A DNA stretch of 64,000 bases from Thalia democratica (lineage: Eukaryota): contig OZ241826.1 in NCBI GenBank assembly GCA_965202585.1, positions 23,064,001-23,128,000 on the forward strand, written 5' to 3'. This document shows, in pieces, positions 4,423-36,484 of the stretch. The notes under the pieces are model-generated. The model was not told the DNA's origin and made no database searches. It saw only the letters and a list, made by a program, of their open reading frames with translations. The position numbers and the translations under genes are program-made. Position 1 is the stretch's first letter, and the number at the start of each line of letters is the position of its first letter.

Positions 4423-5091
4423 CTACAGGAAAACTCTTTGATCTCGTTGGTCTATTTCCAAATCAGCATTGAACTTCAAAAGTTTGTACGAATCAGGTGC
4501 TACGTTTCTTTTGCAGCACGGACATTGTTTACATCTACCCCCAACAATATTGCCAGCACATTTGCAACACAACGGGTGTCCGCAAAATGGCGCTACGATG
4601 TGCAGGTCTTCATCAAGGATCTCCTTGTAAGTGCTGAGACAGACGGGACAGCTGTTTTCATCAAAAAACTTCGCAACTTTGCTGTCTTTGTCGTATTCTG
4701 TCAATTCTCGTGCTATTTCACACTGATCAATCGCACTTTCTCCGGCCGGTACACTTTCGCACTTTCCACATGTCATCACTGGAGGCACGGGAATTTTCAT
4801 TGTTAGTTCGCAGTCGCCCATCAAGTCGTCGTCGTGTAACTCTTCGAAACCTTCGAGTATTTTAGATCGCATTCTGACGAGTCCCGTACCACGCACGAAC
4901 ATGTTAACAATTTGAAAAGCCGCCCTTTCTTCACTGGGGTGTCTGAACTTGATTCTGGAGTAAATTCGAAACCTGCCTCCGTGAAGCAAAAACGATTTCT
5001 TTCCGTCTTTGCGAAGCCACATAATGAATTTTCCGTGTTTGCCCCGGAAGCTACATCTTTTAATTATTATTTTACCAATTGAACCCGACAT
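4423..5091 (-). CDS. Intronless RING-HC (C3HC4) finger protein, 222 aa, putative E3 ubiquitin ligase
   Basis: C148-x2-C151-x18-C170-x-H172-x2-C175-x2-C178-x11-C190-x2-C193. The ORF is uninterrupted and much more GC-rich than its flanks. A ttttacag acceptor lies 16 nt upstream of the ATG. Confidence 0.85.
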   Translation of the reverse strand: MSGSIGKIIIKRCSFRGKHGKFIMWLRKDGKKSFLLHGGRFRIYSRIKFRHPSEERAAFQIVNMFVRGTGLVRMRSKILEGFEELHDDDLMGDCELTMKIPVPPVMTCGKCESVPAGESAIDQCEIARELTEYDKDSKVAKFFDENSCPVCLSTYKEILDEDLHIVAPFCGHPLCCKCAGNIVGGRCKQCPCCKRNVAPDSYKLLKFNADLEIDQRDQRVFL

Positions 5092-6305: not shown

Positions 6306-8229
6306 CACTTTATGAAATATACTTGTTCACCTTTTGACATTTGAAATAAGTCTTTTATGTTGACTAACAATCTTACTAAAATAAACTCGTGTTGTGTTGT
6401 TGATGTTATGTAAAGTTTTCAAAACTTTGTAACTAGTATGATAAACATTTCGTCTACGAATTTACATGTAAAGTAATTTTAGTAACCACACAAAAACTCA
6501 TTTATATATTAACTGTATTAAAAATCTAATGTTTTTAAAACCTTGTTTTTTTTTTTGAAACCAGTTAATTGGTGAAAACTAAAATTTTGATTATACAAGT
6601 AAAACAAAAATTAAAAACTTGTTACAAACTGTAAAGTTAAAGTAAAATCATAAGTTTAGTATTAATGAAAGAAGTTAAAAGGTGTTGATTTTATAATTAA
6701 AGTTGCATATTTAAAATACATAACTAGTTTTATAGTAAACACATTTCTAAAGTATAAGTTACACTTAATGAGATAAAAGCATATTTAATGTAAAAACATT
6801 TGAGATTTAAAATTAATAACTCTTTCAACGTTTTGAGAGTTTTATTGTTTAAACAGGGATGGAATGCTAAAAACTAGTTTAAAAGGCTTCTAATTTAAAT
6901 TTTATTTCAAACAAATCTTTAAAAATTTAAGTATTACACGGATAGTTTAACAATGAAATAACACTAATTGTAGAACTTAAATAGTTGTAAAAACTAACTA
7001 AATAAAAAGATGAAAAGACCGGAACACTAGTTAAGTAAAACCAAGCTTAGTGTAATTCAAACGGTCATGACTCTTTAGAAAAATAATTTTTTGAATTTCT
7101 AAAACTGCCTAACAGAGTAGAAAATATGTAAAAACTTAGGCTTATTTAAATAAAGGAGTTTTAAAATTAAACATATATTTCACAATTGTGTAAAATATTA
7201 ATACATAAATATTATTAAATCATAAAAAAGTATAAACATAAAAGAAAGGCGGCTATTTATAAAAATATTGCACTTAAACTAAATGTTAACTAAGACAATT
7301 TTTTAAATAATTTAAGTTCTTGAGAATTATTATATAAGATGAAGCTTATGTTGTATTTGAACTAAGTGAAATCATTTTATATTTGAAAAACACAAATTGT
7401 TTTAAAAGGTAAAAACTATTCTAAAATCCTTGTTATCTTTTAAGCTATGGTGGTGAATGGTATATAGTTTTTAAATTTAGACCAAATACTAATTAATAAA
7501 GTTATTTATATCCAATAGTGTAGAAATTTTGCACAAAAAACAAAATATTTAAAATTTTTAGATATTATGTTTAAAAGTACATTTATTAGTTTATTTTTAG
7601 TATATGTATTTGTACCTTTTTAAAACTTAATTAAAAATGCACGAAGTAAAAATACAAACATAAGAATCTTTTTTTTTTATGATAATAAGTATATATAGAT
7701 TAATCAAAATTTTGAAATCTAAAGAACTTTACTTGTTTTTTAACTAATACAAATAAGAAATTTATACTGCCATAAATAAAAATAACAAGATTTTAAAGCA
7801 CTATTTCTTGACCTAACAACTCCAAACTAAAATAATTTTATATTTTATTTTTTGATACTTGATAATTCATAGCTTTATTTTACAGCTTGAGTAGTTAATA
7901 TCTTTTTTTTAGTTAAATTTAGTTTAATTGTTTTGTGTCAGTACAATAAGTTGGATATTTTGGCTTTTTTAATTTTGATAGAATGTTTTACCAAATTGGA
8001 TTCTAAGTGTTCTCTAGTTGAAAAATACTAAAGCAAGGTTTTCTGAATTCATTACTAAAATCCAACATTTGACATGAGTTTTAAAAGTTATGATCATCTT
8101 ATTTGTTATATGTTTTAATATAAAAACTTAAAATTTTTCTTTTAAACTCGTTTTTAATAAAGAGCTTAATAATGATACTTTATAAAAAATAATTTTTTTT
8201 GCTTATTCAAATAGATTTTTTGTTTAAAC

Positions 8230-13651: not shown

Positions 13652-15785
13652 GGTAACGGGTCACTTTAGCACGAGGAGACACTTTTGCACGAGGGTCACT
13701 TTAGCACGAGGAGACACTTTTGCACGGCGTCACTTTTGCACGAGGGGACACTTTTGCACGGCGACTCTTTTGCACGAGGGTCACTTTAGCACGAAGGGAC
13801 ACTTTTGCACAGCGACTTTTTTGCACGGAGGGTCACTTTCGCACGAAGGGACACTTTTGCACGGCGTCACTTTTGCACGAGGAGACACTTTTGCTTGGCG
13901 ACATTTTTACACGGCAAAACTTTTGCACGACGTTACATTTGTATAGCGACATTTTTGCAAAGCGTAATTTTCGCACGGCGTTATATTTTCACGGATATAC
14001 TTATAAACTGCGAAAATTTTAAACAATCAGCCAATTTTGAACGGAGCTTCACTTTTGCACGCTTATAATTTTTATTTTCTCAAATAGAAATTTAAATCAT
14101 TTTTTTTTTCAGTCAACTTAAAAAATGTTTGCTTTTATACGCAAGTTTTTTTAAATAAATAAAGTGTTGAAGTTTTTTCATAAAGTTTTAATGTAAAGTT
14201 TTAATTTGAATTTTTACGTAGAACATTATAATAACGTAAAAAAATTCACTAATTTATATTTATTATCTTAATTTAAAAAAACTAGATGAATACACAACTT
14301 TAAATAAAAACAATTTTGAATACGTTAAATGAAAATAATCTGAATTTTGTAACTTTTAAAACAGAAAGATAAACTTAGTTTAGTAAGGCTTTTAAAATCA
14401 AATTTTGAGTATTATTGTTTATTTATTTTCTCTTGAAGTTAAAATTAGCATTATATAGTTGTTAAAAAGATATTTTAAAATTATCTTAATTTCAAACAAT
14501 TGTTAAATTTAAAAAAAAAGATTTAGTTAGTTTATGAAGTGCAAAGGTATTTCAGACTTCACTTGATGTTTATTTTTATTTTTTAATTTAGCGTGAGAAT
14601 AAAAAAAAACAATAAAACAGCGCATTTTTCATGATTAAACTTAGACAATTTCATTACTATAATGTTGCAGATCATGATAAGCCAATAAGAGAGTGACATT
14701 TGGAAGTTTGAACTTATGTTTAAGTATTATGAAGTATCAAGAGATGCTTACACCAGCATTTGAGAGCCAATGAAAGCCAATGAGAGCCTAACTTTAAAGT
14801 CCTTCGAGCGTTAAATTTTTTTTGAAGTTGTTAGTCAATGCACTTAAATATTCAATGTTGATCGTTCTACATCAAGGCGTAAATAAACATAAATTTGTGG
14901 TTAAAATTTTGCTTTTTATGTTAACCTATAAATTTTACATCAAATTATGTTTTTTATCTTTGTTATAATAAATAAATTATTTGTGTTAATTTATTTTTTC
15001 TTTATGTGTCTTCCAATTTAAGTGGTCTCGGTTTTGATGCCTAGGTTCATCATATGAACAATAAACTTGTAACTGTATAGTAAAATATATAAAAAGGCAT
15101 AGTTGTTGATTAATATATTAAAATTCAAAATAAACTAGAACAATTTACTCACACTTGAAGAATTTTTTATCGTAGTTTCTAAATAAATTAACTTATTTGT
15201 CCCTGGTATGAATCTTGTAAAATGATTTTATTTTATCTTTGTGTTAGTTTGTTTCTAACATTAACGTTTGCTGTTTAAGATTTTAGATCTTTAATTTTTT
15301 GCCATTAATAAAGGTATATTATAAAGTTTTAGTTTGAAATTTCTTTTCATGTTACAGATTTGGTAGTAGATAAAAAACTTTTAATCGGCCAACATGTAAA
15401 ATTGATTTTCCTTGCAAAAAAGTCATCGTGGCAAATTTCGCTGTGCAAAAATTTCATCGTAAAAATGTGACGTTGTGCAACAATGCTGCCGTAAAAAATT
15501 GTCATCGTGAAAAAATTTCGCCGTGCAAAAGTGTCCCCTCGTGCAAAATTGACCCTCCGTGCAAAAGTGTCGCCGTGCAAAAGTGACCTTCCGTGAAAAA
15601 GTGTCGCCGTGCAAAAGTGTCCCCTCGTGCTAAAGTGACCCTCGTGCAAAAGAGACGCCGTGCAAAAGTGTCCCCTCGTACACAAGTTACCCTGCGTGCA
15701 AAAGTGACGTCGTGCAAAAGTGTCCCCTCGTGCAAAAGTGTCCTTTCGTGCAAAAGTGACGCTCGTGCAAAAGTGACACCCGCCC
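13652..15785. mobile_element. 2134 bp foldback/Mutator-like non-autonomous element with modular TIRs and 10 bp TSD
   Basis: Perfect direct repeat gtatgggcta at 13642-13651 and 15786-15795. Arms of ~400 bp are built from tandem acttttgcacg units and their inverse cgtgcaaaagt. The ORFs called in the arms are repeat artefacts. Confidence 0.9.
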
Positions 15786-19760: not shown

Positions 19761-21314
19761 ACGCTAAGATTTAACAAAGTTAGTTATACAATTATATTAA
19801 TAGTGTTTAAAGGCGCATTTTTCTAGTAGCGATTATAATTAAGTGTCAATCAAAAGATAAACTAATTTTAAATCAGGAAATACCTGGGGGTCGAACTACC
19901 AGAGCTTTTGCTTAAACTAAATAAAAAATTTACATTAAGTTTCACGTTTTATAGCTTAACCTTTATAAACGTTTCTTTAAATAAACCCTGTTTCAATTGT
20001 ACTGATACTCTGCAGGCTACTATGGTCTTTAGCTTTACGTGAAACTGCCTTTCTAACTGGTTCTGCAGTCTCGACAGGAGCCAGATTTGCAGTAGTTTCT
20101 AGGAAATATTTATTTTTGTTTGATACATCGATCTGCGACCGATTTTGAGGTGGTTTATTACCTTTTTGATACATTTTAATGATTTGTATAACTTTATCAA
20201 TAAATCAGCAGAGTTTCTTAGATTAGCATTATAATGGTTGAATTGCTTATCTTTGTTGTTCAAGTTATACACTTTTGCTTCAAAATTGATTTTATAAAAA
20301 ATATAAAATAAAGATTCCTTACACTTAAATAATAGAAAATTAACAAACTATTTCAATCTCAAAAACTATTTAAAGTTATACAAAAAATAAAAAATGGCTT
20401 GTAGATATTGATAAGACTTACATACAAACTTTTATTTATTCTAAATGTACACTTTTTTAAGTTGTGGCCCTTTAACTTTTCTTTGACATTTTGAATTGTC
20501 AGAATTTTAACATCCGAATTTAAATAGTCCTACACCCCTAAGAGAAACGATTTACACACAAATTTAAAGAAATATGACATGAATTGTGGCCTTGAATATT
20601 ACCGTTTAAGCGCTATTTTATCCATTTGTTTTAATACTACTAAAACCTGTCAAGTGTCAATACTACGTAAATAGTATGATATTATGCGTAAATTAGTAAA
20701 AAAGAAATAATAACAAAGAAAAATATTAAAAAGTTAATAAACATTTGACTTATCCAAAATTTACCGGTTTAAGTTAAATAAAAAGAATTCATGCTCACCA
20801 AATCATGACCACATTAGTTTAGGCTTGCTTTCTCATATATTTTTATCCCAGGGTTCTGTACAATAAAGCGAGATTTTACCTAAACATCCTAATATGACCT
20901 TTTTCGAAAATGGCCTGTGCGTACCAGGGAACTACTTTTATAATTATTATTATATCGAATAATAGAAAGTTATTATATTTGGACAAATTTAACTATATTT
21001 ACCTTAATTTTTTAAATAAAATTATTCTAGCTAAAACAATAACATTGATAGTCAAAACATATAACAACAAGTTTACAACTAAAACAAATAAAAATAAACT
21101 TTCAAATTTTTGACTTAGTTAGACCTTACTTTTTAAAATAAAACAATTTGTTAAGTATTCAAATTTTTTACATAAGATCAAATCCTGCTTTAACAAAAAA
21201 TTTAAACGTAAGATCATTTCTTTCAGTAAATTTTATTAGTGAGTAAAGCAGAAAGAAAAAAAAAAAGACCATCAAATTTAATCTCTGAGGGACCTCAAGT
21301 CGCTTAAAGACATT

Positions 21315-22538
21315 TTATCCAATGAGGAACACTCGCTCAGCTTTCTGCCTTTTTTCTTCTGAAAGCTTCTCTATCGAACAGTGTTTAGAGGCGGCCATCC
21401 GAAACTGAAACTCATCGCCTTTCATTTCCAAGAACTCACCGCAATGGTCGCAAAATCTGACCCCGGCGTAATCGGACAGCGTCACCAACACCTTGTACTT
21501 ACCGCTGTTCAAAGTTGCTCTCAGAGAATAAGTGCCATAGTTGTATGTTTCGCCGGACTTATTGGTTTCTAAAAATACTGAAGCAAAAGTAATTTCGTTG
21601 TCAGAGTTGACAATAAAAATTGTGGGGTCCACTTCGAGATCGTGTATTGTGATCAGGTTTATCAGCACCTCCGTGTCGTCCTCATCAACCACCAGGTCGT
21701 AACCCATGAAATTTATATCAAACCGCGGTTTCAGCGCAGGCCAAGTTTCGTTGATCTCCACAGAAGTTTCAATTTGCGCCATTCTGAATACACTGCTTTC
21801 GTTGTAAGAAATGTACAGCGCTTCCAGATTTTCGTAGAAGTCGCTTTCGGTAATGCGATGGTATGTGCCGTGCGGGTTGTAAACCTTCGCCACACCGTCA
21901 CTCACGTCAAGCAGAGTGTAACAATGATACTCGTGCGAGTTCTCTGGCTTCTTGAACGTGACCAGCATCGGAGAATTGGTCTTTAAACCGTGGTTGACAA
22001 CGTCGCTTGCTTGGAACGGCAGCGTGGTTGAAAAAACCGGAAACTCTTCGAAGTAGCCGTTGGTGAGGCTGGTCAGTACGGTGGTGGCGGGCACCGCTCT
22101 GCAGGACTCGTACTCGCCGTCAAAGTGCAGATCGACCAGGGCTTTCTCGAGCAGCGGGCCGACAACGTCATCGTTCGCGCTCGTCGAGTAAACCAACTTT
22201 GAGTTTGTCCTCGGCAAGCTGTCCACGTCGACCGCGACCCGATGAAGTTTTCCGAGCTTGTGAATGTTGAATTCAAACTGTTCGTCGCCTCGTCTGAAGT
22301 TCACCACTTTGTTGTACAACTCGGCGTTGCTCGCCAACGTGGCCATTGAGGCAACGAGACAGCAGTTTCCTAAAGCTTTGCTTTGCACAAAGCTTTTCTC
22401 GCTGATGACGTCATCAAAGTTTTGGCCAATGTAACGTGAATCCGTTGCAAGAACACCATTGTAACTTGGGCTATTTGACAACAGCACTGTCAAAATTGAG
22501 AAAACTAGAAGTAGTTTATTTATGTTAAGCTTAAACAT
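21315..22538 (-). CDS. Intronless atypical calpain (CysPc plus C2-like/CBSW domain, no PEF) with N-terminal signal peptide, 407 aa
   Basis: QSKALGNCC (QGxLGDCW), LLEKAL, HCYTL and YNPHG give a Cys70/His216/Asn232 triad (numbered from ORF Met 22571). The C-terminus is beta-sandwich-like. The second Met (22538) follows a ttttcag acceptor by 2 nt and starts MFKLNINKLLLVFSILTVLL. Confidence 0.85.
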   Translation of the reverse strand: MFKLNINKLLLVFSILTVLLSNSPSYNGVLATDSRYIGQNFDDVISEKSFVQSKALGNCCLVASMATLASNAELYNKVVNFRRGDEQFEFNIHKLGKLHRVAVDVDSLPRTNSKLVYSTSANDDVVGPLLEKALVDLHFDGEYESCRAVPATTVLTSLTNGYFEEFPVFSTTLPFQASDVVNHGLKTNSPMLVTFKKPENSHEYHCYTLLDVSDGVAKVYNPHGTYHRITESDFYENLEALYISYNESSVFRMAQIETSVEINETWPALKPRFDINFMGYDLVVDEDDTEVLINLITIHDLEVDPTIFIVNSDNEITFASVFLETNKSGETYNYGTYSLRATLNSGKYKVLVTLSDYAGVRFCDHCGEFLEMKGDEFQFRMAASKHCSIEKLSEEKRQKAERVFLIG

Positions 22539-23551
22539 TTCTGAAAAGAAAATTGTAGAATCGTCTGGCATATTTTCTAACTATTCTAAACTTAAAATTT
22601 TAGGTTTAGTATCTGTATAATTTACAAAATAAATAAAATTAAAAGTCATCAGATATAAACGGGAAAGACTTTGCTACTAATAAATGTACGACTCTATATA
22701 TGAAGTATAAAAAAATATTTAATAGTTATTATTAAACAAACATAAAGTGAAAAAAATATTTAATAACTTAAAAAACTTATTTATACGACTGTTTTAAAAT
22801 GAACACAAATTTAATACTTTAATTGTTTAAAATCCCTTACAAAGTGTAAGTTAGAAAAGTATCTTTTTATTTAATGATTGAAAAAGTATAAATATTTTCA
22901 ATGCCTATAGTTTATAAACTAAGACTTACTAAATCTTAATTTTTAAATATTTTATATATAAAGAAAGGCCGCATGACGATCAAAGCTAAAAAACATAAAA
23001 CTAACAACAGCTAGATTTTAAAAAGTTCCAAAAGTAGCAAGCTTTATAGCAAATTCAAGATAGTGAATATCTGTGCACATTAAACTTGATAAAAAAGTGT
23101 GCACCTTAAATTTTACTTTAGTGGCTTACTAGTTTTAGTTCAACCCAACACTTTTAACTGGTCACACGACCAAATACTTTAAGCTGAAGCCTGATAAAAG
23201 TTCGTTTGTCTTAACTCACAAAACTTTAACAAAATGATGATAGAATTAATCTGTTATTTATCTTACTAAAGATTATTTTTATTTTACTGTTTTTATTATA
23301 GAAAAAGTTTTTTATTTACATTGCCCACGTCTAACAAACTCAAACAAACTTACATAGTCTGTGATACCTACTGTAACTTAGCACTCTTAGTGTGCTCTTA
23401 TTAGGTATTAGTTTTGTATAGTCAACTTAATGTTGAAACAATAAAAAAAACAACACAAAATAAAAAAATGTAAAAATAAAGTATATTAAGGCGCTGTATG
23501 TTGTAAAAAAGTTATTAGTAACCAAGTCTGTGTACTTGAAGAGAATGAGGT

Positions 23552-23949
23552 TGTAGGGTTATAGCGTACAATTACACTAAAAACCATAATTAATTTTAAA
23601 CTTAAATTATACTAAATGCTGATATTGAAAAAGTAATAAGGGCTCTTCTACATAAAATGAATGAACATATTGTATTAAAGAAGAATTGCAAACACTTACA
23701 AATATATAAAGAACATCATACTTTAGAAATTACTTTAAATGTAGTCAAAATTTAAACATAAAACAATCTAACAAGAATATATTTTAAGAATGTAAAAATT
23801 AAATAAAATTCAATTAATTAGAATTTGAAAAAAAACTATTATAAAAAGCAACATTGTTAAAAAAATACTTTAAATAACACAATTAAACAACATAAGTGTC
23901 TATTCAACATGAATAATATGTTAACTGCAGCTGGCTGTGGCTAGAATGC
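23552..23949. repeat. ~400 bp duplicated segment, copy 1 (copy 2 at 25790-26188)
   Basis: Shared tgtaggg...aaatatataaagaacatcatactttagaaattactttaaatgta...ctgcagc.ggctgtggctagaatgc, at an offset of ~2.24 kb. Confidence 0.85.
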
Positions 23950-24479
23950 TAGAAAGAGAATCGTCACTCTATTTATCCACTGCATTTTCGTTGGAAGATA
24001 TACAATAACCTTTTTTCATAAACAAGAAAAAAGTTAAACATATCAAGCTTTAAACTGGTCTAAAAAATACTCATTTTTTTTATACAAAGATTTAGGCAAA
24101 CTAAAAATAAAATAACTAAGCAATTTTTACAAACAGTCTTTCAGTTATAAAATTTTTATACTTTTTCATAATCAAAAAAAAGCTAATGTGTTTTACTAGC
24201 TTCAACAATTTATTTTATCTTTCGAAATAATATTAAACATGTGTCTGATTCTACTATAAAGATTGCAGAACTTTAAAAAACAGTTAAATAAAAAAATTAC
24301 TAAAAATTAACTTAAATGTCATGCCTATCCCGTAAGATACAAACTCCTAAAAAATTTCAGCAGTTTTTGTTGGTCTTCGCTGTCTTAACTTAATACGTAA
24401 TTTAGATTTAAGATACTTTCATAGATTTTAACATTACTCACTGTGACTTAAGTTGGTTTTCAACCCTTTTTTTACTTAT

Positions 24480-25420
24480 TTGGAGTTATATTTGCCAAAA
24501 TTTGTTACTGATTTGGGCTTATAGTTTGCTAATATTTTGTGAATTTGGCTTATAGTTTTCCAATGCTTTTGGATTAAGCTTTTGGTTTGCCAATACTGAT
24601 TTACGCTTATTGTTTGCCTGTAATTTTTGGCTTGGGTTTGTAATTTGCCAATACTTTTGTTAGACTTAAAATTTGTCAGTTCAAATTTGACTTGTGGACT
24701 TAAAATTTGTTAGTTCTATTTTGACTAATGGAATAAAATTTTGTGAGTTCTAACTTGACTATGTAGAAATTAAATTTTTCAGTTCTGTTTTGATTTATAG
24801 ACTAATAATTTGTTAGTTTTATTTTGACTTGAAGACTTAAAACTTGTCAGTTCTACCTTGAATCAGGGTTGCCACTCGTTTTTACAAAAAAAAATCCAGG
24901 TTTTCCAAGTTACTCGAGGTTTTTAAATTTACGCATTGTTTGGTCTATTTTAGTTTAAAGTTAAGTTTAAGGTAAGAAACTGTTTTAAATAGTTTTAAAA
25001 CTTTAAAAAGATATTGTAAAGCATTTAAATATATTTTTTAGTAAAATAATTTTTGGTGATGACAAAAATTTTTGTTAATATATATATTAGACCTTAGAGT
25101 TAAATTAAAATTATACTACTTAAAATGTTAAAATTTTTTAAATCTCAGGTTTTTTCAGGCTTTTTTAAATTTATTAAAATTCCAGGTTTTTCCATTTTTA
25201 TTCCTGCTAAACTTTCAAATTCCAGGTTTTTTTAAGGTTTTTCAAGGTTTCCAGGTAAAGTGGCAACCCTGTTTGAATGTTTGGACTAAATTTTGTCAGT
25301 TCTAATTTGACTTTTTGAACTTAAAATGAGATAATACCCTTTGTGAATTATTGATCAAATTTTGTCACCTACTTTCTGTGATTTAAAGACTTAAATTGTG
25401 TCAATACCCTGTGAGCTTTA
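24480..25420. repeat. Degenerate ~30-34 bp minisatellite interrupted by a MITE
   Basis: Repeated unit gtcagttctaatttgacttgtggacttaaaattt at 24677-24863 resumes after 25272. A variant unit (ttgccaata..ttgggctt) occupies 24480-24670. Confidence 0.75.
24864..25271. mobile_element. 408 bp hAT-like MITE
   Basis: Perfect 12 bp TIR cagggttgccac / gtggcaaccctg, flanks cttgaat / tttgaat (imperfect TSD), and subterminal ccaggttttt repeats. Related right ends occur at 57765-57776 and ~62407-62416. Confidence 0.9.
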
Positions 25421-28399
25421 TACTTTTTGTTCATAATGTGCGTGGTATTTTATAAGTATAACTCCCTATTTCCTGGTATTTTCAAGCCTCTGTCTTTCTG
25501 GTTATGCTTAAACCTAAAGGGCTATTAAAAGGGCAGATACTAAATGTGAATATTGCTTTTAAAAAATTCAATGCAGGCTTTGTTGTAAAATTTACCTAAA
25601 TCTGATATTTAATAAAATCCACTATAAAATAAAATGACAAAAACCTAAAAAACGTGAAATAAATATATGATAAATACTACGTTAAATATAAGAGGTAATG
25701 TACTTATAAAAAAATTATGGTAAAATATTGTCTTGGTTTTATTTAACTGTCACCTAAAAGACTAAATATTCATTACCTGAATGACGCCATGTAGGGTAAT
25801 AGTGTAAAGTACAAAAAAACCATAATTAAATTTAACTTAACTTATACTAACTGTTGATATTAAATAATAATTACTCTGTATAAAACTAGGCAAGACAATA
25901 AATGAGCATATTATGTTGAAGAACAATTGCAAACATTAAAAAATATATAAAGAACATCATACTTTAGAAATTACTTTAAATGTAATCAAAACTTTCCTGA
26001 GGAATCAACCAAACAGGAATAAAAATAAATAATTTTTAAAACAAAATAAGATATAACTACTTAAGATGTAAACAAAAATTAATATAAATGTAACATTGTT
26101 AGAAAAACACTTTAAATAACACAAGAAAATAATACAAATGATTCAACATGAATAACATGTTTACTGCAGCAGGCTGTGGCTAGAATGCCCCCACCACTCT
26201 CTGTGGCTGGTTTATAAAGCAATGTTATAAAATTTATTCAACATTACATTATTCTCCTTATGTAAACTTGCATCAGTATAACACTTGACCTTGCGAGCTT
26301 TCTCTTAAACGCTTGGATGAACATGGATTTTAGCTCAAAACTTTACATTAAATTTAAACAGTAATCGAGTGAAATTTGATATCCTGTTACAGGGTGCTGT
26401 TCATTGCAGTTTATTAATGCTCGATGCTTTAACTATTGTTTTTTGAAAATAACAAATTAGAAATTAACTAGTGTTTTTTTTTTCTGATTAAGTTTGTTTA
26501 CCCTCTTTGTAAAGTAAAAAAAACCACTAATAACATAATTTGAATCAAATTCGCTGAAATAGTTGACTTAAGCGTCTTATAATTTTTAGTCAAATTTTGC
26601 AAAGAAGTTTTGTTGTTTGCATGAAGCTAGAAGCTGATAACAAAATGGCATGTGGTGCAATTGTGTTTGATGTTTTATAGAACTCACTGATAACTGAAAA
26701 TTTGATTATAAAGTTGCTTATAAGAAGGTGAAAAAAAAATTTTGGGAGGATGTTCTGAAAACCTTTTACCCCAAAGCCTAAGTTAGTTGATAAGTATAAA
26801 TTTTACAATTAAAAGTATTTTCTTAATGTAAACTTTGAAAATAAATTATGTTTTGTTATTTAAAACATCATGGGTTATTTTGTTATTTTAAATCGTAAAA
26901 AGTCTTCATTAGTTTTGATCTTCACAAAACAAAAATTTAACATTGTGTCAGTTTTTGGAAAGGCAGTTTTCAAGTTGACTTGTTTCAATTTGTACAACAT
27001 TTGCGTAGGAATACGACCTATATATATATATTTTTTTTTAGAGACTGCTAAACTTTTAGTAAGATTTTCTTTTATAAAATAGTTAATTAATACTTTATTG
27101 GCTTATATTTCAAATATTTGTACAATAAAAAACAATGTATCTAGACAAACTATAAGTAATTTATTAAAATATAAAAAAACAATTATTCACAGGTAGTTCG
27201 TAAACTAAAAAAAAAAGAAAAATAAAATCTTCATATTCGAATAATTGAAGTTGCACCACTGAATAACACTCCTTGAATATTCATTGAACATTTTCCATAT
27301 CTGTTGAAAATTTATGGTTTTATTTAAAGAATGTTACACAAATCTTTTTAATCAAATAAATTTAAAAATACTTTCGCAAATTTTTAATTTTTCTCTAAAA
27401 TTTGACTTAAATAATATCTTAAGTTGGAAAGTAAAATATATATATATACATGTATATAGTTTATTGAACGAAAAAGACGCTCAAAGCATTCGATCTTAAG
27501 AACTAGTGCATGAAAACCTTACGATTGTCGAGTCGCACACCACAGATACCTTTTAACGTCTTGTCAACGAATTAAAGCGGTTTGTATGAAATGGTTGAGA
27601 AACCCTGGTGTACACATGCTCATTACGCACTTTATACAGAAAAATTTATTCTGTTACTGGTATGTCTGAAAAATACTATCCAGTATATTAGGCGGTGTAA
27701 CAGTTACAAAAAAGATATATGAAAATAATTAGACACATGATTTTTAAAAATTACAAAACTTTACAGCACACATTAAGGAAACTTAGGCTCCTGAAAAAAT
27801 ATCTCGTAAATCTACTTTTTGGTAGAAATTGGGAAAAACTTCATTTTCAAAATTTTTTATACAGTTGTGGTTTGTCACGAAAGAACAAACATTTTGAACA
27901 CAAAAAACCAAGAAGCAGGTCTTGGTTTTTTAGTTGTGTGGAAGTTTTCAATAAAATCTGGCAAAATTAATCAGACGATTAAAGTAAGCATTCCATAGTT
28001 TGCCTTTGGTGTTAAAAGAATCGCAAGTGGGTATGGTGATCTAAATAACCACTTTTAATTTTTAAATGAAATTCTGGTCAAAGATAAGATAATAAAACTT
28101 TAACATATGATAAGAACTAACAAATTAGTTTTGTAAAACACAACTGTATATGAAGAAATATGCATTTAGTTTTTTTAAGCTTTCTTAAAAGCTCACTTTG
28201 AAAACTATCTAAGCATTTAAGTTTAGTTTGAGAAAAATTAGTTACAATATTCTAACAGAACAATATATTTCTTGCTCTTTAAAACTACAAGTTTGACTAA
28301 TTGAAAAAATTTTGGCTCAAACGAATGTAATTGAAAATATTGTAATTTTTTAATGTTAAATTAAGTAAACTTCTTTAGTCATCTTAATAAAAAAGTTAA

Positions 28400-29124
28400 T
28401 AGGAGTCTATTCTAGAGATGTTTGACGCGAAGAACCTGATTGGGCTTCATTTGAATGTGCAAGACTTGAGTATCTAGTTAAGATACCTCAAGACTATAAC
28501 AATCGTGTTGAAAACTACAGATGAGTGTGAGATGGTCAAAAAGAAAATGGCGAATTTAGTATTTTTCATGATGCTAAATAATAAGAAAACAACAGAAGAG
28601 GCCATAACTTTACTAATTACATTAGATACAGTGATACATTGCAATAAAGAAATTTAAGAACTATGATGATGGAAATATGCTTTAGCTTCTTGATAGATTT
28701 TAAAAAGATATTAAGTCCAGACTGGAGCTTTGTGTTAGCAGAAAGCTAGCCATATTTGCGATGAAAAGTTGTCAGTAAATGAAAAGGCATATGACAGAAA
28801 ATTCTACCAAAGCCTGACACATCGTTCCTTCAATGATTGATTGAAGACTTGCAAGTTCACGTTGATTCTTTTTATTGTAGATACTTGAAAGACAAGTACC
28901 TAAAAACTGATAAAAATTGTAAGCATAAGTTAGCTTCTAAATTGGTAGAAGCTGTGAGGAAAAGAGGAGGAGATGTTAAAAGAAAAAAAATTTCTATTTT
29001 CCATGACAATTTAAAGAAATTGCAAAATTTGAATCATTGTTATGTTGGATATTTCAAGGATAAGAATGTAATGACAGAGAAATATGATTCGGCCAAGAGA
29101 AAAGGAATGTGGCTAAAATCTTGA
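28400..29124 (+). pseudogene. Degraded coding-like island of unknown origin, possibly an additional viral gene fragment
   Basis: Purine-rich composition similar to the downstream L element, broken reading frames and a residual 95 aa ORF (28837-29124). No motif confidently recognised. Confidence 0.25.
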
Positions 29125-29192
29125 TGCCATAATTACAAATAGAATAGTATATAAGATTTATTTAAGAGACAATACAATAGATTACTTTAGAG

Positions 29193-29330
29193 TAGGGGTA
29201 GGCAACTTACGGCCCGCTGAGTGAAAATGACCGGCCCCCAATTTTTTTTAAATTTAATTTTAATCAAGCCCGCATAAAAATTTGACTAGACCCGCGATAG
29301 GGTTATTCTGCCAGCTAAGCATTTTCAAAA
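29193..29330 (+). mobile_element. hAT-type transposon 5' terminus
   Basis: taggggtaggcaacttacggcccgc followed by cggccc/gcccgc subterminal motifs. Confidence 0.5.
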
Positions 29331-31327
29331 TTTATATGAAATCCGGCCAGTCAATGTAAATAATTAAAAATTTGTACAAAACCTTTTTTTGAATTTTTTC
29401 CAGAAAACAAAACCGTATGACTTTGACCCTAAAAAGGTTTTTGCAATTGACTTTTAATTTTTGTGATGATAAAAACACCTTTTTATAATAGTATCTTGTT
29501 ATATAAATATTGTAGAGCTATACAAATAAATACTTCAATTTAATAATAGGTTCATAATCAGGTATCAAGTATATACAATTGGTGTTCCAGCTCACGACAC
29601 AGGCAGGTTTTATATGAAAATCATTACTAAAGGATACATGGAGGAATTCCTAAACGTCTCATATTTCCTGGGTCAGCTCGTTTGCTCAGTATTTATGAGG
29701 CTAGCCAAAGATTAATTGTGTACTGGGGTTACCTTAAGTTGTTTTTTGAAGAGGTTTATAAAACAGGGCTTTAAAAATAGGCTTTAAAACATTTAAGTTT
29801 GTAACAAATTAAAAGTTTTAAACAGTTTTGTGAGACAGAAAGATGCTCACAAGCAAATAGAATAGCCAGCTTGCTTAAAAATACAGAGGTATTTATATAG
29901 ATTTCTTTTCTTCTGCTTGTTGTACAAAAAGTAAGTGTATATTATAAACCATTAATTATAATGCAGAGTTTATTTCAATATGTGTATTTTGAAGGTTAAT
30001 AATTGCAATAAATTTATTTAATCAGAATAGATAGTTCCATTGAGCCTTTATAGCCAGCTTGAGACATGCACAAGGCACCTTAAGTTAACTTATGTTGATC
30101 CTGCATCAGGTAAAAAAATAAACAAGTTTTGTAGTTATATAAAACAAGACTTACCTCCATTTTTGCTAATTTTATTTGAGGTTAAGTAAAGTAATTCTTT
30201 TTAAAACTTATTCTCCACTCCACCTTAAAAGAAGTATTGTTGACTTAATTCAACTTAGTTTTTAATAACTGTAAGAACTACGACTTGAAAGGCCAACTAT
30301 AAGTGTCAGACTACCTGCAGAGCGTGAGTTAACAAAATTAGGTGTCGTCCAGCAGAACAGAGTAGTTTGCATTTGCTAGTTTCTAAAATCAAGTATGTAA
30401 TTTTTTGTAACATTAACAACTAATTACACTAAGCGTTGGCACTAGATTCCCAGTTTTTGAAACCTTTTTTTAGTATAGTGTACATCAGACATGTTAAAAA
30501 GCTTTGCTTTGTTTACTCAAGCGTGAAATTAATAACTTAAAACAAACTAAATTTTATACGCTTCATTGCTGAATTACCATAGTAATAATTAGCATTTTAA
30601 CAAGTCTGGTGTACATAGTTTAATACACACAAGTTTTAATGAAAATATTGTTTCTATAGTATTTGAATTCTAATAGATCAGATCTACTTGCAAGTTGTAT
30701 GTTATGAGCCTCGTCAAAGAACTTAAAGCACGTATTCCTAAGTGTTTGGACTTAATCAAAAGTATCTCAGTACTTAATAAAGTGAGCTTTTTCAGTTTTT
30801 AGTAGAATTCGGCTGTAAGTTAAATTGATCTGAACTGTAAAATAATAGGTATTTGAGTTTCCTTTGCCTGAAATTAGTCCATTATTAAATAATAAAATAG
30901 TTTAGAATATGACTTTACAAGAAGAACGTGACTTTAATGAAAATTAATGGTCCTTCTTGTCTGCTGAATATCATGAAGCAACATGTTGTCACTTATCATG
31001 TTTATACATTTTCTAGAGCATCATTATTAATAAACTTTGTTAATACTATAAATAGAATTGTCAATTTAACTCTTAGGAAATCAGTTGTTTAAATCTCAAA
31101 AGTTTTAACAACACAAATAAAGTTAAATGAGAAAAATGAATAAAAAAAGTTGTGCGATAGATGCAAATTTTTTTGTGAATGACGTAAAAACACAGCCAAC
31201 ACTTTAAGAGTGCTTGAACTAGGATCAACAGAAAGTTGTAAATTAGAAATTTTTGTTTCAGTTTTTTTAAGTAATCTAACTGATCAAGCCAGGTTAAATT
31301 AAGTTGGTAAAAGTGAGCGAAGCTTAT

Positions 31328-33418
31328 ATGGATTTTGAAGAAGATTATATAGAATGGGAGACAGCGAAGTCCTCACCTATAACGCAGGTAGACTACAATC
31401 TAAACTCTCCGTTGATGATACGGGATGATGACTACATGAGAGATTTCCTTTTGTGTGGAAGAAGTGTTCCTCCAGACTTCAATTCTAAGCGGAAACTTTG
31501 GGAATTAATGAAGGCAGATAATCCACTTAGAGAAAGAGACAAGTTAATACCATATCAGGATTATCATTCGACGATGGTTGAAATACTCAATGAAAGATGG
31601 TCTGGATATTCTAGAAAGAATGTATTGACCATGTGGGAGGATATCTATGATATCGCACAGGAGCCCGTCAAGGTTATATCTGAAGCCCTCAATTTAGAGC
31701 ACAAAGACAAAAGCTTAAAGGGTAGATTTAAGAAGCTGTTAGATCCTGTCGATCATAGTTACAACAAGATCTCAGAATATATGTTTGGTAGCATCTTATT
31801 TTTTTTGATGACTCTGATTATCAGTTCTAGCGACTTTGGAACAGTATTTTCCAATGTGAGACGTTATTTTATGAAAATTAGCAAGGATCCCAAATTGGAT
31901 ATAGTGTCGGTAAAGAACAAGGAAGAAGAAGTTATTATAAAAAGATATCCCGGAGCTGTGTATTTCCGAAAATGGAAGATGGTGGTTTCTAGAAATTTCT
32001 TTTTGATGATTAAAGATATATTGACAGCAAGAGGAAACGGTCTCGCATCTCTCATAGATAGACAAGATCTCGGTGATGAACTGTATAATATACAGACTAT
32101 ATTATCGATGTATAAACATGGAGATGAGATCTTAAAACAGACTGGATGTCACGGCTATAAAGGTATCAAGCTTTTGGAGCCCATATGCAATGACAGGATG
32201 GCAGAGCTGGCAGATGGAATGAAGCTATTTCCTCGATTCGATGCCCTTTACAAACATATAGGAAAGACAATAACTGAATTGCCCTTGGGTGACCTGACAA
32301 GCAAGCTATGGTCATTAGTCAGAGATCAGACCAATCCTAAGTTAATTGCTAATATGTTTGGATCCTTTCGTCACTGGGGACATCCCTACATCAAGAGCTT
32401 AGAAGGAATATCTGATCTTTATGACAGAGTCACCTCTAAAAGAGATGTGAATTCAGAGTATGTTGAAAAGCTAGCAAGTGATTTTGCAAGAAAAATATTG
32501 CGGAGTGTCTTTTTGAAGCAAAGAAGGTGGAGTGTGGATGTTGAAAAGATGGATGAGTCAGATCCCTTATACAGTTTCATCAAAAACAAAACATGGCCTA
32601 CTAAGAAGGTGATCTTAGATTATGGCGACAAATGGCATCGATTGCCCATAACCCAGGCATTTGAATTGCCAGAAGCTATAGATATGTCTGATTTGTACTC
32701 TGACAAATCTCATAGTATGGATAGATCTGAATTCTTAGAAGCTTTGAGGACTGGATCGGGAGAGTTCTTCAAGTCCAAGAAAGTAATGAAAACGTTATTG
32801 GAAGCTCCAGACCTCTGTCTAAAGGATAAATTTGAACAATGGAGTCGTGTGGGAATACCGGATGAAAATAAAATAATCGGATTAAAAGAGAAGGTAAGAG
32901 AATTGAAAGAAAAGGGGATATTCTTCTCATTGATGAGCTGGGAATTGAGACTGTATTTTGTGGTGACGGAATACTTGATCAAGGAAAATTTCCTTCCTTT
33001 GTTTGACGGTTTGACTATGGGTGACAGTCAATCATCCGTCATACAACAAATGGCGAAAAACACCAGAGGACACGGGAGAGATGACTATAAGCTGATATTT
33101 GTCAACAACAGTCTAGACTTTGAAAAGTGGAACAATCTGCAGAGACATGAATCAAATAGTCCAATTTTTAAAGTTATGGACCAACTCATGGGTTTAGATA
33201 ATGTCATAGAAAGGACCCATGATCTGTTCAAAGAGTGCTGGGTTTATTATGCAGGAGGTAGGCAAATGATGACGATCAACGATGATAATCCAGAAAATTT
33301 ACATGGTGTGAGGGTGTTTTGGGAAGATCAAGAGGGAGGTTTTGAGGGAATTAGGCAAAAGGGATGGAGCATAACTGGTTTTTATATGTTAGAGAGAGGC
33401 AATGCAGGAAAATGCTGA
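31328..33418 (+). CDS. Intact 696 aa N-terminal portion of the viral L gene (ends just before motif C)
   Basis: ATG at 31328 (MDFEEDYIEW...) is in frame with the ORF-track ORF 31304-33418. It is terminated by an apparent 2 nt loss in a GA run at 33391-33398. Expression is unknown. Confidence 0.55.
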   Translation: MDFEEDYIEWETAKSSPITQVDYNLNSPLMIRDDDYMRDFLLCGRSVPPDFNSKRKLWELMKADNPLRERDKLIPYQDYHSTMVEILNERWSGYSRKNVLTMWEDIYDIAQEPVKVISEALNLEHKDKSLKGRFKKLLDPVDHSYNKISEYMFGSILFFLMTLIISSSDFGTVFSNVRRYFMKISKDPKLDIVSVKNKEEEVIIKRYPGAVYFRKWKMVVSRNFFLMIKDILTARGNGLASLIDRQDLGDELYNIQTILSMYKHGDEILKQTGCHGYKGIKLLEPICNDRMAELADGMKLFPRFDALYKHIGKTITELPLGDLTSKLWSLVRDQTNPKLIANMFGSFRHWGHPYIKSLEGISDLYDRVTSKRDVNSEYVEKLASDFARKILRSVFLKQRRWSVDVEKMDESDPLYSFIKNKTWPTKKVILDYGDKWHRLPITQAFELPEAIDMSDLYSDKSHSMDRSEFLEALRTGSGEFFKSKKVMKTLLEAPDLCLKDKFEQWSRVGIPDENKIIGLKEKVRELKEKGIFFSLMSWELRLYFVVTEYLIKENFLPLFDGLTMGDSQSSVIQQMAKNTRGHGRDDYKLIFVNNSLDFEKWNNLQRHESNSPIFKVMDQLMGLDNVIERTHDLFKECWVYYAGGRQMMTINDDNPENLHGVRVFWEDQEGGFEGIRQKGWSITGFYMLERGNAGKC

Positions 33419-36400
33419 AACTAGCGTATTATTACAAGGCAATAATCAGATCATAACAAGGAAATATAAAGTTAATGCGGCAGATGAGAAAGGTATATTA
33501 AGAGAATTAGACAATATAAGAGCTAATAACAATATAATGTTAAACAAAGTAAGAGTGGGTAGTGGAAAGTTGGGCTTGACTCTAAATCAGGATGAAGTTA
33601 TGACTTCTTGCGAGTTTATAAATTACGGAAAGTTGTTAAAATTCTGAGACAAAACTATACCTTTAGAAATCATAAGGCTCTCGAGGGTAATGAGTGTTAC
33701 CAATGGACAGTTACCATCTTTTAGTGCGAATTTGTCTTCTACATCGACAGCTGCATTGACTATATGCCAGTACTCAGATTCTCCTGTGTACTCAATGTTG
33801 GAATACTCATTCTTCGGAGCTTTGACTTTCTTGCTTTCTATGATACACAGTGTCGTCCTAGGAGAATCTTACATAAACACCAAGACAAAATTTGATGACC
33901 CTTCAACATACAAGTTCATCATAAGATATCTGTATAAGAATCCAAGTGTAGGGGGCGTATCAGGAATGAATCTGTATCGTTTTATGCTCAGGGGATTTCC
34001 TGATCCTGTCACAGAGTCACTTTCCTTGTGGAAAATGATATACGACAATGGAAACTCTATCCTCAAGGAACTAGCCATAGAGGCGGGAAATCCGATGTTA
34101 GGGCCTGTGGATCAAAGATCCTTTTATAGACTGTTAGAAAAACCCGAGTCTTTAAACATACCAGGTGCAATATCTTATAAAACAACTTTAAAAGAAGAAG
34201 TAAGGAAGGGGCTAAGAGATCATCTTCCAAAAATTCACAACAATTTTCTTATAGAGGCAATTAATTACAATTTCGACAATACACATGACACAGTCAATTA
34301 TATCATGCAGATTAAGCCCCTGTTTCCGAAATTTAACTCAGAATTTTACCAATCAACGTTTCTTAAATTAGCTGATTCTGTGATAGGACTGTTTGACAAC
34401 TCAAATACGATACAAAGAATATTTTCTGAAGAATTAAATTGACATATGGGAAGTGGTGAGAAGGAGTGAAAGAGACTCTCTCAAACAATTGATAGATCCT
34501 AGGGTCGGGAGTTTCAGTGAAATTTGGGGATGCTCTTCTAGCAGAGCAGACAGACTAAGAGAGTCTGGTTGGGGATCTAAAGTGGTAGGAACTACTATAC
34601 CTCATTCTTTTGAGATGTTTCAGAGGATAAAAGTAGAAGATTGAGATATCATATCTGAACCTCATGTCTTGGTCAAAAAACAGGGTATATCTTGGTTGGG
34701 GGAATGGAAGAGGGGCCCCTTGCATGCCTATCTAGGTTCTAGAGCCAAGGAATCCACTTCTTTATATCAGCCCTGGGAGCGAGATGTGGAGGCTCCTACT
34801 CTAAGAAGAGATTTGAAGCTCCGAGATGCCATAGGATGGTTCATTATGTCTGGGTCCTATCTGGCTAAAACAATATTTAGTAATATTCTAGCTTTATTAG
34901 GTGTTGATATTGAAGAAGAGCAGACAAAATTCTTGAGGTCAGGAAATCCCATACATAGATTTTACTCTTCAAGGCAGAGCTACCAAGGCTCTCCTGGGTG
35001 TGGAATAAATAGTCTCACTGTTTTACGACTACAGATTACTTAGGAGACATTAATTCAGAAAATCACGACTTCATGTACCAGTCAGTTATTATTTGGTCTT
35101 CAGAACTGACCATGTTTCAACCGTATATGAAAGTGAATGTAAAACCGTATATGAAAGGAGTATTGGATGGACTGGTCGTGGAAGCAAGCATAGGCTCTAT
35201 GACCAAGAGATTTACAGAACATAAAATCAATTTTAGATATGTTCATGAAGGAGCTGTTTTATCACTCATAACATCCTTAGCTTCTAATGACAACTTTCTG
35301 CAATGTCTAAAATTGAGTGAATTTGAATCATACATCTCTGATAGATCTGGAACCTTTAGTAAGAACTACCCTCCCACTCTAGGAGACATTTAACATCTGG
35401 TCATGTCATGGTTCATTGATGAGATAATAACATCAGGAATGAGACCATTGAGGCCAGACATGTGGCTGTTCGCTGACTTATGCACTCTGAAAATGAAAAT
35501 TTTATTCATAATATGTAAAGAGTGTCAAGACTGGCTCACAGGAAGAATCTAGATTCTAGAGACATAAAAGTTATAGACATTTTAAGAACTTTAATGTCTA
35601 ATTACGCCAGTTATTTTGGAAGGCCGGAATTATCAGGAGAACTCCACAGAGCTTACCCCGATATGAATTTTATAGAGTTTAAAGGAGCCGATTACCAAGT
35701 ACGAAAGGCGATAACGGCACCTAAATTTAAGAATCCTAAATCCAAGTCCAAAAAGAAGAAAAACAAATTTAAAAGAGAGAGGATCAATTTTTCATCTATC
35801 ACTGAGAATCTAGAAGTTTTTCATTTACCTAGGGAATTAAAAGACGATTCTTTAATGATTGCTCATGATTACTCAAATCCAATCATATCCGGGAAAAGGC
35901 TTGTCTATCTCAATACGGGAGCTCATTACAAATTAAAATCCATGTTGAGAAGAAGGGACAATATCAAAAGGGCTATGATAGTGTGGGATGGTGCAGGAGG
36001 AATAACTTATTTGGTATTGGGGATGTATGATGATTGCAGAGTGTTTTATAACTCCATATTTTCTGTGACTGATAATTTATCAGGCTGATTGTCTCCAGGA
36101 GTCCCAGGAGCTCTCACTGTACTGTCCGATGCTCAATCAGCTCGACGTGTAAACAGAAAGTCTGCATGGAAGCCATCCTCTGACCTCTCAAAATCAGATA
36201 CTTGGGATTATTTCAAAAGCATAGTGACAAAATTCTTTGACGGGCGAAAGTGTGAACTTTGCATATGCGATGCAGAGATAATTTCTGAAGAAATGACTAG
36301 TAGAATAGAAAATCTTATGTATGATCGGCTTCAAGACGTTCTCAAAGTTGGAGGAAGAGTGATACATAAGACATTTTGGAACAGATTGATGAAAAGTCCT

Positions 36401-36484
36401 CCAAGTCTAGTGAAACTTGTGGAATTGTTCCATATCGTGAAGGTTGTAATTTTTTTAAATAAAATCACAATAATAGGTACCTAA
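31328..36484 (+). pseudogene. L: Endogenous viral element: rhabdovirus L (RdRp, capping, connector, methyltransferase), C-terminally truncated
   Basis: Colinear motifs DYNLNSPL, FRHWGHP, K.RELK, DFEKWNNLQR (motif A), QEGGFEGIRQKGWS (B), LQGNNQII (C, GDN altered), GTTIPH, YLGSRAKES, IHRF (HR), WLFAD, TGAHYKL, DGAGG, SDL...TWDYF. At least 8 stops/frameshifts after 33390. Confidence 0.97.

Follow-up and report, generated by a model that had tools for sequence, protein, structure and literature searches.

Can an animal calpain be made for secretion? The question is raised by an open frame at positions 21315–22571 on the minus strand of a 64,000-nucleotide stretch of the Thalia democratica genome (GenBank assembly GCA_965202585.1, contig OZ241826.1, positions 23,064,001 to 23,128,000 of the forward strand), hereafter called the window. 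A first-pass annotation, made from the letters of the window, had described this frame as an intronless calpain with an apparent secretion signal. In the textbook view, calpains are intracellular, calcium-activated enzymes of limited proteolysis. The annotation had likewise described animal calpains as cytosolic, and the literature agrees: eukaryotic calpains are cytoplasmic, with few predicted membrane-bound exceptions (PMC4631099). No animal calpain with a signal peptide is described in the calpain literature examined. The window gene is read here, with a probability of about 0.6, as a signal-bearing, secretory mini-calpain that belongs to a very large, intronless, lineage-specific family of this pelagic tunicate.

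The frame is uninterrupted, with 418 codons and no stop inside. Of the four closest copies (L003, which is the window locus itself, L004, L005 and L006), two, L004 and L006, have its first ATG (22571) out of frame, and more distant paralogues lack this ATG. Homologues from other loci and from metagenomes all begin at the methionine of MFK(L). Met12 of the frame is therefore taken as the conserved start of a 407-aa product, and residue numbers throughout count from it. The single-exon coding sequence (CDS) then occupies 21315–22538, from the ATG at 22538–22536 to the stop codon at 21315–21317. The 11 residues encoded in frame upstream (MPDDSTIFFSE, 22539–22571) are probably noncoding 5′ leader or outron. 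An upstream coding exon, which would make the hydrophobic start internal, was sought in the 8.7 kb at 22572–31300; this interval has no GC-rich exon-like peak and no open frame of at least 50 codons with exon-like GC content.

From the ATG at 22538 the protein begins MFKLNINKLLLVFSILTVLLSNSPSYNGVLA. Its opening, MFKLNINK-LLLVFSILTVLL-SNSPSYNGVLA, has the layout of a signal peptide, predicted by feature inspection, structural modeling and clade conservation to cover residues 1 to ~25 (22464–22538). The n-region, MFKLNINK, carries a charge of +2 (Lys3 and Lys8). The h-region, LLLVFSILTVLL, has 12 residues (Leu9–Leu20) bounded by Lys8 and Ser21, and the Kyte-Doolittle mean across residues 9–19 is 3.02. 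The c-region, SNSPS, is polar; Ser23-Pro24-Ser25 is followed by Tyr26, which leaves small residues at −3 and −1. A basic n-region, an h-region of 7–15 residues and a polar c-region are all present by inspection, and their N-terminal position depends on the proposed Met12 start. The 15 residues that come next are net neutral. Because Lys3 and Lys8 precede the h-region and a net-neutral stretch follows it, translocation of the C-terminal side is favored.

A pyrimidine tract with AG (ttcttttcag, 22550–22541, minus strand) stands ahead of this start, followed by aa and the ATG, and the signal-like N-terminus does begin 2 nt after the annotated ttttcag. At all 13 loci of the clade that contains the window gene, an AG lies 2–3 nt before the ATG with a T-rich tract ahead of it. 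Nine of the 13 have the strict motif Y5(N)YAG, which has a background chance of ~0.045 per 30-nt interval, and the remaining upstream sequence is unrelated between subclades. Paralogues differ in whether 2 nt or 3 nt separate the AG from the ATG, so the spacer is probably untranslated. The element is a candidate acceptor for a spliced leader or for an intron in the 5′ untranslated region (5′-UTR). The 16-nt ascidian-type spliced leader, a tunicate hallmark, was searched for together with GT; this 18-mer has 358 copies in the genome, against 0 for a control. Given the hundreds of leader copies, the site at 22541–22550 is most simply read as a probable acceptor for trans-splicing immediately ahead of the start codon, and a cis-spliced 5′-UTR intron is equally compatible with the DNA. 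The hydrophobic stretch would be N-terminal in either case.

The leader copies with GT stand partly in regular arrays, for example at C26:7129–84046 with ~15.1-kb spacing and at C4:80.16–80.42 Mb, and the window holds a one-mismatch copy of the 16-mer at 8202–8217 on the minus strand. A genome-wide search for the leader followed by ATG gave three matches, all of them unrelated short frames.

The hydrophobic start is shared by close relatives. In a maximum-likelihood tree computed with the N-terminal region trimmed off, the family is monophyletic on a long stem, and the clade of 13 rows that contains the window gene has an SH-like approximate likelihood-ratio test (SH-aLRT) value of 100. A strongly hydrophobic segment from about residue 9 is present in 13 of the 13 rows. 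This segment drifts in sequence (LLLVFSILTVLL, LLTLLIACAFL, FILLLACLFLI) but stays hydrophobic across the clade, and several relatives have canonical small-residue cleavage motifs, e.g. ACASASS in P0003 and AMCAAEN in P0004. P0002, with 74% identity to the window protein across the aligned positions, has an extra transmembrane stretch at its C-terminus; together with a signal peptide this would give a type I topology with the enzyme outside, which fits an exofacial enzyme. Judged from these sequence features, the window protein probably enters the secretory pathway. Sequons and cysteine counts do not discriminate in this N-rich proteome and were set aside as evidence for secretion.

A signal peptide is not the only possible use of such a segment. 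It might be an uncleaved signal anchor; instead of a soluble secreted enzyme, the product would then be a type II protease held in the membrane, on its lumenal or outer side. The sister subclade L011–L015 looks more anchor-like, with an uninterrupted hydrophobic stretch of 19 residues and the catalytic region within ~15 residues, and the second hydrophobic stretch of P0002 points toward a membrane as well. Membrane-bound calpain homologues have also been predicted in Caenorhabditis elegans, Trichomonas and plants (PMC4631099). The 12-residue h-region of the window protein, however, is short for a bilayer span, and it is followed by the polar c-region with its small residues at −3 and −1. An anchor is accordingly considered an unlikely outcome for this protein.

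No better odds are given to a protein that stays on the cytosolic side, with an N-terminal helix that either attaches it to the surface of an organelle or is left over without any targeting role. Characterized animal calpains are all cytosolic or membrane-peripheral. Elsewhere in the family the start is not hydrophobic, is myristoylation-like (MGNAIS) or is basic and amphipathic (MYKIGRR), and the ancestral state may be cytosolic. Against this placement, the charges around the h-region favor an N-in/C-out orientation with the enzyme in the lumen, and hydrophobicity has been kept in the 13 clade members despite sequence drift. The signal-like label requires at least 3–4 changes on the tree. The family has diversified in its predicted N-terminal addresses, the window clade being the clearest secretory one.

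The myristoylation-like start is found in the clade of L021 (G000:C10:17747616–17748704) and the metagenomic protein P0034. Here MGNAISRS, an N-myristoylation-type motif kept between species, lies only ~25 residues ahead of the catalytic Cys.

Behind the N-terminus the protein is a calpain. The Peptidase_C2 profile (PF00648) matched it with 55.4 bits against a cut-off of 23.8 (E 6.6e-15), over profile positions 50–194 of 297 only, and matched 41 of 41 family members. Sequence matches to calpains in the PDB are limited to residues 52–166. The protease core (CysPc) was placed at residues ~41–250 (21789–22418) from the profile match, the fold and the invariant residues. The full Cys/His/Asn triad named in the first-pass annotation is present as Cys59 (codon 22362–22364), His205 (21924–21926) and Asn221 (21876–21878), which align, together with Gln52, with the catalytic residues of classical calpains. 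Gln52, Cys59 and His205 are invariant in the alignment of 41 family members, and 40 of them have Asn or Asp at position 221. The alignment also upheld the proposed loss of both active-site Trp residues: GNCC and NPHG stand in place of the classical GxCW and NPWG. NPHG occurs in one classical out-group sequence too.

An AlphaFold2 model was built on the 41-sequence family alignment and reached a mean predicted local distance difference test (pLDDT) score of 83.7 and a predicted template modeling (pTM) score of 0.83. The pLDDT is below 50 only at residues 1–5 and 18–40, and a detached helix lies at 6–20; residues 18–40 are disordered. The top Foldseek match of the model is m-calpain (3bow_A, E 3.4e-17, 445 columns). 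With a second structural aligner, model residues 28–393, comprising the core and domain III, matched the same chain with Z 26.2 and a root-mean-square deviation (rmsd) of 3.2 over 330 residues. The isolated cores of calpain-1, -3 and -9 gave Z 21–22 (rmsd 2.4–3.2, 207–222 residues), and unrelated papain-like folds reach only ~Z 10.

The annotated C2-like domain was recovered by fold but not by sequence. In the model, residues ~255–392 (21363–21776) form a C2-like beta-sandwich of the calpain domain III type. Residues 28–386 align to residues 70–506 of the m-calpain chain 3df0_A and run through its domain III (356–506), and the C2-like part matches the C2-like domain of calpain-7 (2qfe) with Z 10.3. 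The Pfam profile Calpain_III (PF01067) matched 0 of the 41 members at E ≤ 0.1, so domain III is recognizable by its fold only. By alignment, the domain carries a family-specific Cys-x2-Cys...Cys insertion. Residues 394–406 (21318–21359) form a C-terminal helix, a family-specific tail assigned from model secondary structure and alignment, and the chain ends 15 residues past domain III. An EF-hand domain had been noted as absent, and no Pfam EF-hand match was found in the window protein or in any of the 41 members, whereas out-group calpains do match.

In rat calpain-2, calcium site 1 consists of Ile89, Gly91, Asp96 and Glu175, and site 2 of Glu292, Asp299, Gln319 and Glu323 (PMC4631099). The window protein has a 31-column deletion relative to classical calpains directly after NPHG. 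By alignment rather than by a solved structure, this gap removes the stretch with D299, Q319 and E323, three of the four site 2 ligands; site 1 is degenerate in the same alignment, with Ser49 for Asp96 and Asp124 for Glu175. Because the EF-hand domain, the site 2 segment and both active-site Trp residues are missing, use of the classical calcium switch is unlikely. The mini-calpain is predicted, from alignment and model, to be a papain-like calpain core with a C2-like domain III and nothing more, and to be catalytically competent.

The window gene has many relatives in its own genome. A six-frame search of the 802-Mb assembly with the window protein gave at least 102 scored matches out of 262 candidates; 77 of these matches have no internal stops and about a quarter carry stops. 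A search of the genome with the Pfam model gave 335 candidates. The family copies are nearly all single, intronless open frames of 390–490 codons. Conventional calpains are present in the same genome, with their core and domain III split by introns. Among the four closest copies, L004 lies 238 kb away and is 95% identical, and L005 and L006 are 83% identical. All four are homologous over the whole 4.2 kb compared, noncoding flanks included, and were therefore produced by segmental duplication, not by independent retroposition. Elsewhere in the genome, dense tandem arrays at C8:19.25–20.06 Mb and C1:2.98–5.87 Mb hold dozens of mini-calpain genes, mostly intact and spaced by ~10–20 kb.

Purifying selection on the mini-calpain is shown by substitution patterns. 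The ratio of nonsynonymous to synonymous divergence (dN/dS) is 0.28–0.58 against paralogues and one metagenomic orthologue, and the CDS is better conserved than the flanks among paralogues. Variants listed in three DNA sequencing runs number 2 in the 1257-bp CDS versus 38 in 3244 bp of flanks, with 8 more unlisted; this low count in the CDS is only suggestive of selection.

These values bear on whether the locus is simply a recent duplicate, unexpressed or decaying, with a frame left intact by youth and not by function. The nearest paralogue, L004, is separated from it by a synonymous divergence (dS) of 0.042 with a dN/dS of 0.58. Stops occur in other family matches, the clade members L007 and L008 are broken, and no RNA run is among those listed with the locus. 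Yet dN/dS drops to 0.28–0.38 when less similar copies and the metagenomic orthologue are compared, the catalytic residues are all kept, and the CDS is better conserved than the flanks. Decay is thus an improbable explanation.

The base composition had been presented as that of a GC-rich, intronless gene in an AT-rich genome. The description is correct, as the single frame has a GC content of 0.47 and a GC content at third codon positions (GC3) of 0.60 in flanks of 0.25. It does not set the gene apart from the host: actin and Arp exons of the same genome have GC 0.40–0.60 and GC3 0.41–0.90, and since this GC3 range encloses 0.60 the contrast is an ordinary exon property here. Across the family, CDS GC3 is 0.20–0.63 and flanks are at 0.21–0.30.

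Horizontal acquisition, or a stand-alone retrocopy of a host calpain mRNA, had been suggested, and a gene that is intronless and GC-richer than its surroundings, in a genome whose conventional calpains have introns, would fit; the suggestion is contradicted by at least 102 paralogues, by flanks shared over 4.2 kb, by GC3 inside the host range, by best matches to eukaryotic calpains with domain III, by the lack of any upstream spliced-leader remnant (fossil cDNA copies with the leader joined to a calpain start were found at 0 of 48 loci) and by L050, a host calpain that is also intronless but less derived and that branches basally, with unsure placement. Both horizontal transfer and recent retrocopying were rejected, the deciding grounds being the size of the family, the flanks shared between copies, the host-like GC3 and the eukaryote-type architecture. 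One ancient retroposition may have founded the family as a whole.

L050 (G000:C4:52759189–52759959), a calpain of 403 aa without introns, has NPHG but retains the Trp that follows the catalytic Cys (DCW). Its segment after the Asn is partly shortened, and its PF00648 match is nearly full (E 9.4e-46). It branches at the family base on a long branch with unsure placement and may be an intermediate form. L051 (G000:C9:6551130–6551699) encodes 473 aa in one intronless calpain-like frame, which has diverged strongly and sits on an extremely long tree branch; its N-terminus consists of repeats of ~13–16 residues (…LHEKDVFKMT…).

Outside this genome, relatives were found in marine DNA. A word-indexed protein search returned 32 relatives, all from ENA assemblies and zero from NCBI or UniRef sources, and for this reason the mini-calpain family appears undescribed. 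Exact-protein look-ups of the 407-aa and 418-aa forms gave no match, and a literature search returned nothing combining calpain with thaliacean names. The contigs of P0001, P0002, P0005 and P0017 are marine or Tara Oceans metagenome DNA, not transcripts, and the gene on these four contigs is likewise a single GC-richer frame within DNA of 21–27% GC. An exhaustive search of 1.84 billion representatives gave only 113 proteins at E ≤ 1e-3. Classical calpains appeared in that search (phmmer) only above E 1e-13 and only over residues 51–170. The lineage-specific character proposed for this calpain is in line with these results, as the family was found only in this genome and in Tara or marine metagenomes in the searches made.

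If the window gene encodes a secretory mini-calpain, its pre-mRNA would receive the spliced leader by trans-splicing at the AG 2 nt ahead of the ATG at 22538. Translation would open with a classical n/h/c signal peptide, which would bring the nascent chain into the endoplasmic reticulum (ER). Cleavage would fall near Ser25/Tyr26, and the mature enzyme of ~380 aa would act in the secretory pathway or outside the cell. Several points weigh against this sequence of events. The sequencing runs that contain the locus are three, all of DNA with even coverage over gene and intergenic sequence, and the gene could be weakly expressed or silent. The signal peptide is an assignment by feature inspection, and the trans-splicing step is a proposal drawn from DNA. 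Such an N-terminus is missing from other clades, one of which starts with MGNAIS, so secretion is not a trait of the entire family. The reduced active-site thiol that a cysteine protease needs is also less favored outside the cell.

More important than the one gene is its family: more than 100 intronless genes of a pelagic tunicate for a compact calpain that lacks calcium site 2, with clade-specific N-termini. A bolder proposal, held tentatively and at somewhat less than even odds, is that salps or their relatives turned calpains into a calcium-switch-free module of ~400 aa with hundreds of genes, and that at least one clade is routed to the ER as extracellular or lumenal proteases, the first secreted animal calpain family. 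If this is true, such a clade might serve, for example, in digestion, in processing of the mucous feeding net or tunic, or in defense. A compact calpain with its catalytic machinery and a secretory signal, without the calcium switch and in more than 100 genes, would widen the known uses of the fold. The family would also offer a natural test of a calpain core working without calcium gating. Having been found in Tara Oceans metagenomes and in no annotated proteome in the searches made, it could also mark this plankton group. The clade-specific N-terminal addresses (signal peptide, myristoylation-like, basic amphipathic) provide a compact system for studies of paralogue relocalization.

Candidate regulatory elements flank the gene on the minus strand. 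An AATAAA at 21232–21237, ~80 nt past the stop codon, may be the polyadenylation signal. A TATA-like tatatataaaa at 22950–22960, ~410 nt upstream of the ATG, is a candidate core promoter. Of the upstream sequence compared among the four closest paralogues, the block that contains it (~23024–22929) is the best conserved, with identities to L004, L005 and L006 of 0.91, 0.97 and 0.86, respectively, versus 0.7–0.9 in neighboring blocks.

The rest of the window holds other features. At 31304–36484 on the plus strand, at least five consecutive open frames (704, 250, 124, 188 and 131 aa) match the L protein of Mononegavirales, with hits to the RNA-dependent RNA polymerase (RdRp, PF00946, E 6.5e-119), the capping region (PF14318) and the methyltransferase (PF14314). 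This stretch, of GC 0.33–0.39, is an endogenous viral element in broken pieces. A GC-richer single open frame at 4423–5091 on the minus strand encodes 222 aa with a C-terminal RING-like Cys/His pattern (CPVC...CGHPLCCKC...CPCC) and no Pfam match at E ≤ 0.1. Two minisatellite arrays, at 13656–13959 and 15488–15775, have units of ~17–18 bp with 34/52-bp higher-order periods. Their units are mutually reverse-complementary, and the arrays face each other across ~1.5 kb and may be the ends of a mobile element. They also yield spurious GC-rich open frames.

The mini-calpain is best placed by comparison with known calpains. Classical CAPN1 and CAPN2 (PDB 3BOW, 1DF0, 1KXR) share its core fold with Gln, Cys, His and Asn, followed by a C2-like domain III, at a sequence identity of only ~19–25%. 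Unlike them, the mini-calpain has no N-terminal anchor helix and no penta-EF-hand (PEF) domain, and no small-subunit partner is expected. It also lacks the calcium site 2 stretch, has a degenerate site 1 and replacements of both Trp residues, begins with a signal-like peptide and is intronless.

The atypical calpains CAPN5/6 (TRA-3 type), CAPN7 (PalB type), CAPN10 and CAPN15 (SOL type) resemble the mini-calpain in having no PEF domain. Calpain-7 also lacks both core calcium sites (PMC4631099), and the C2-like domain of the mini-calpain resembles the distal C2-like domain of calpain-7 in the structural comparison. Atypical calpains, however, are larger cytosolic proteins with MIT, C2 or zinc-finger modules, encoded by one or a few intron-containing genes, whereas the mini-calpain has ~400 aa, a signal-like N-terminus and a family of more than 100 genes.

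Bacterial calpain homologues include C2 cores with signal peptides or secretion domains that are predicted to be secreted or membrane-associated and not to depend on calcium (Rawlings 2015, PMC4631099). They have no domain III, bear different accessory domains and are present once per genome. The mini-calpain differs in its eukaryotic arrangement of core and domain III and in its host-like gene features.

Eukaryotic precedents for calpains at or beyond membranes also exist. Calpain domains are predicted at membranes in C. elegans clec-119, Trichomonas TVAG proteins and plant DEK1 (PMC4631099), and the tegumental calpains of Schistosoma are a further case (PMC5635006); searching the text of the Schistosoma paper turned up no reference to signal peptides. 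These proteins have transmembrane helices or no targeting signal. None of them is a short signal peptide joined to a core and a C2-like domain, as proposed for the window protein, and none is amplified to a comparable degree.

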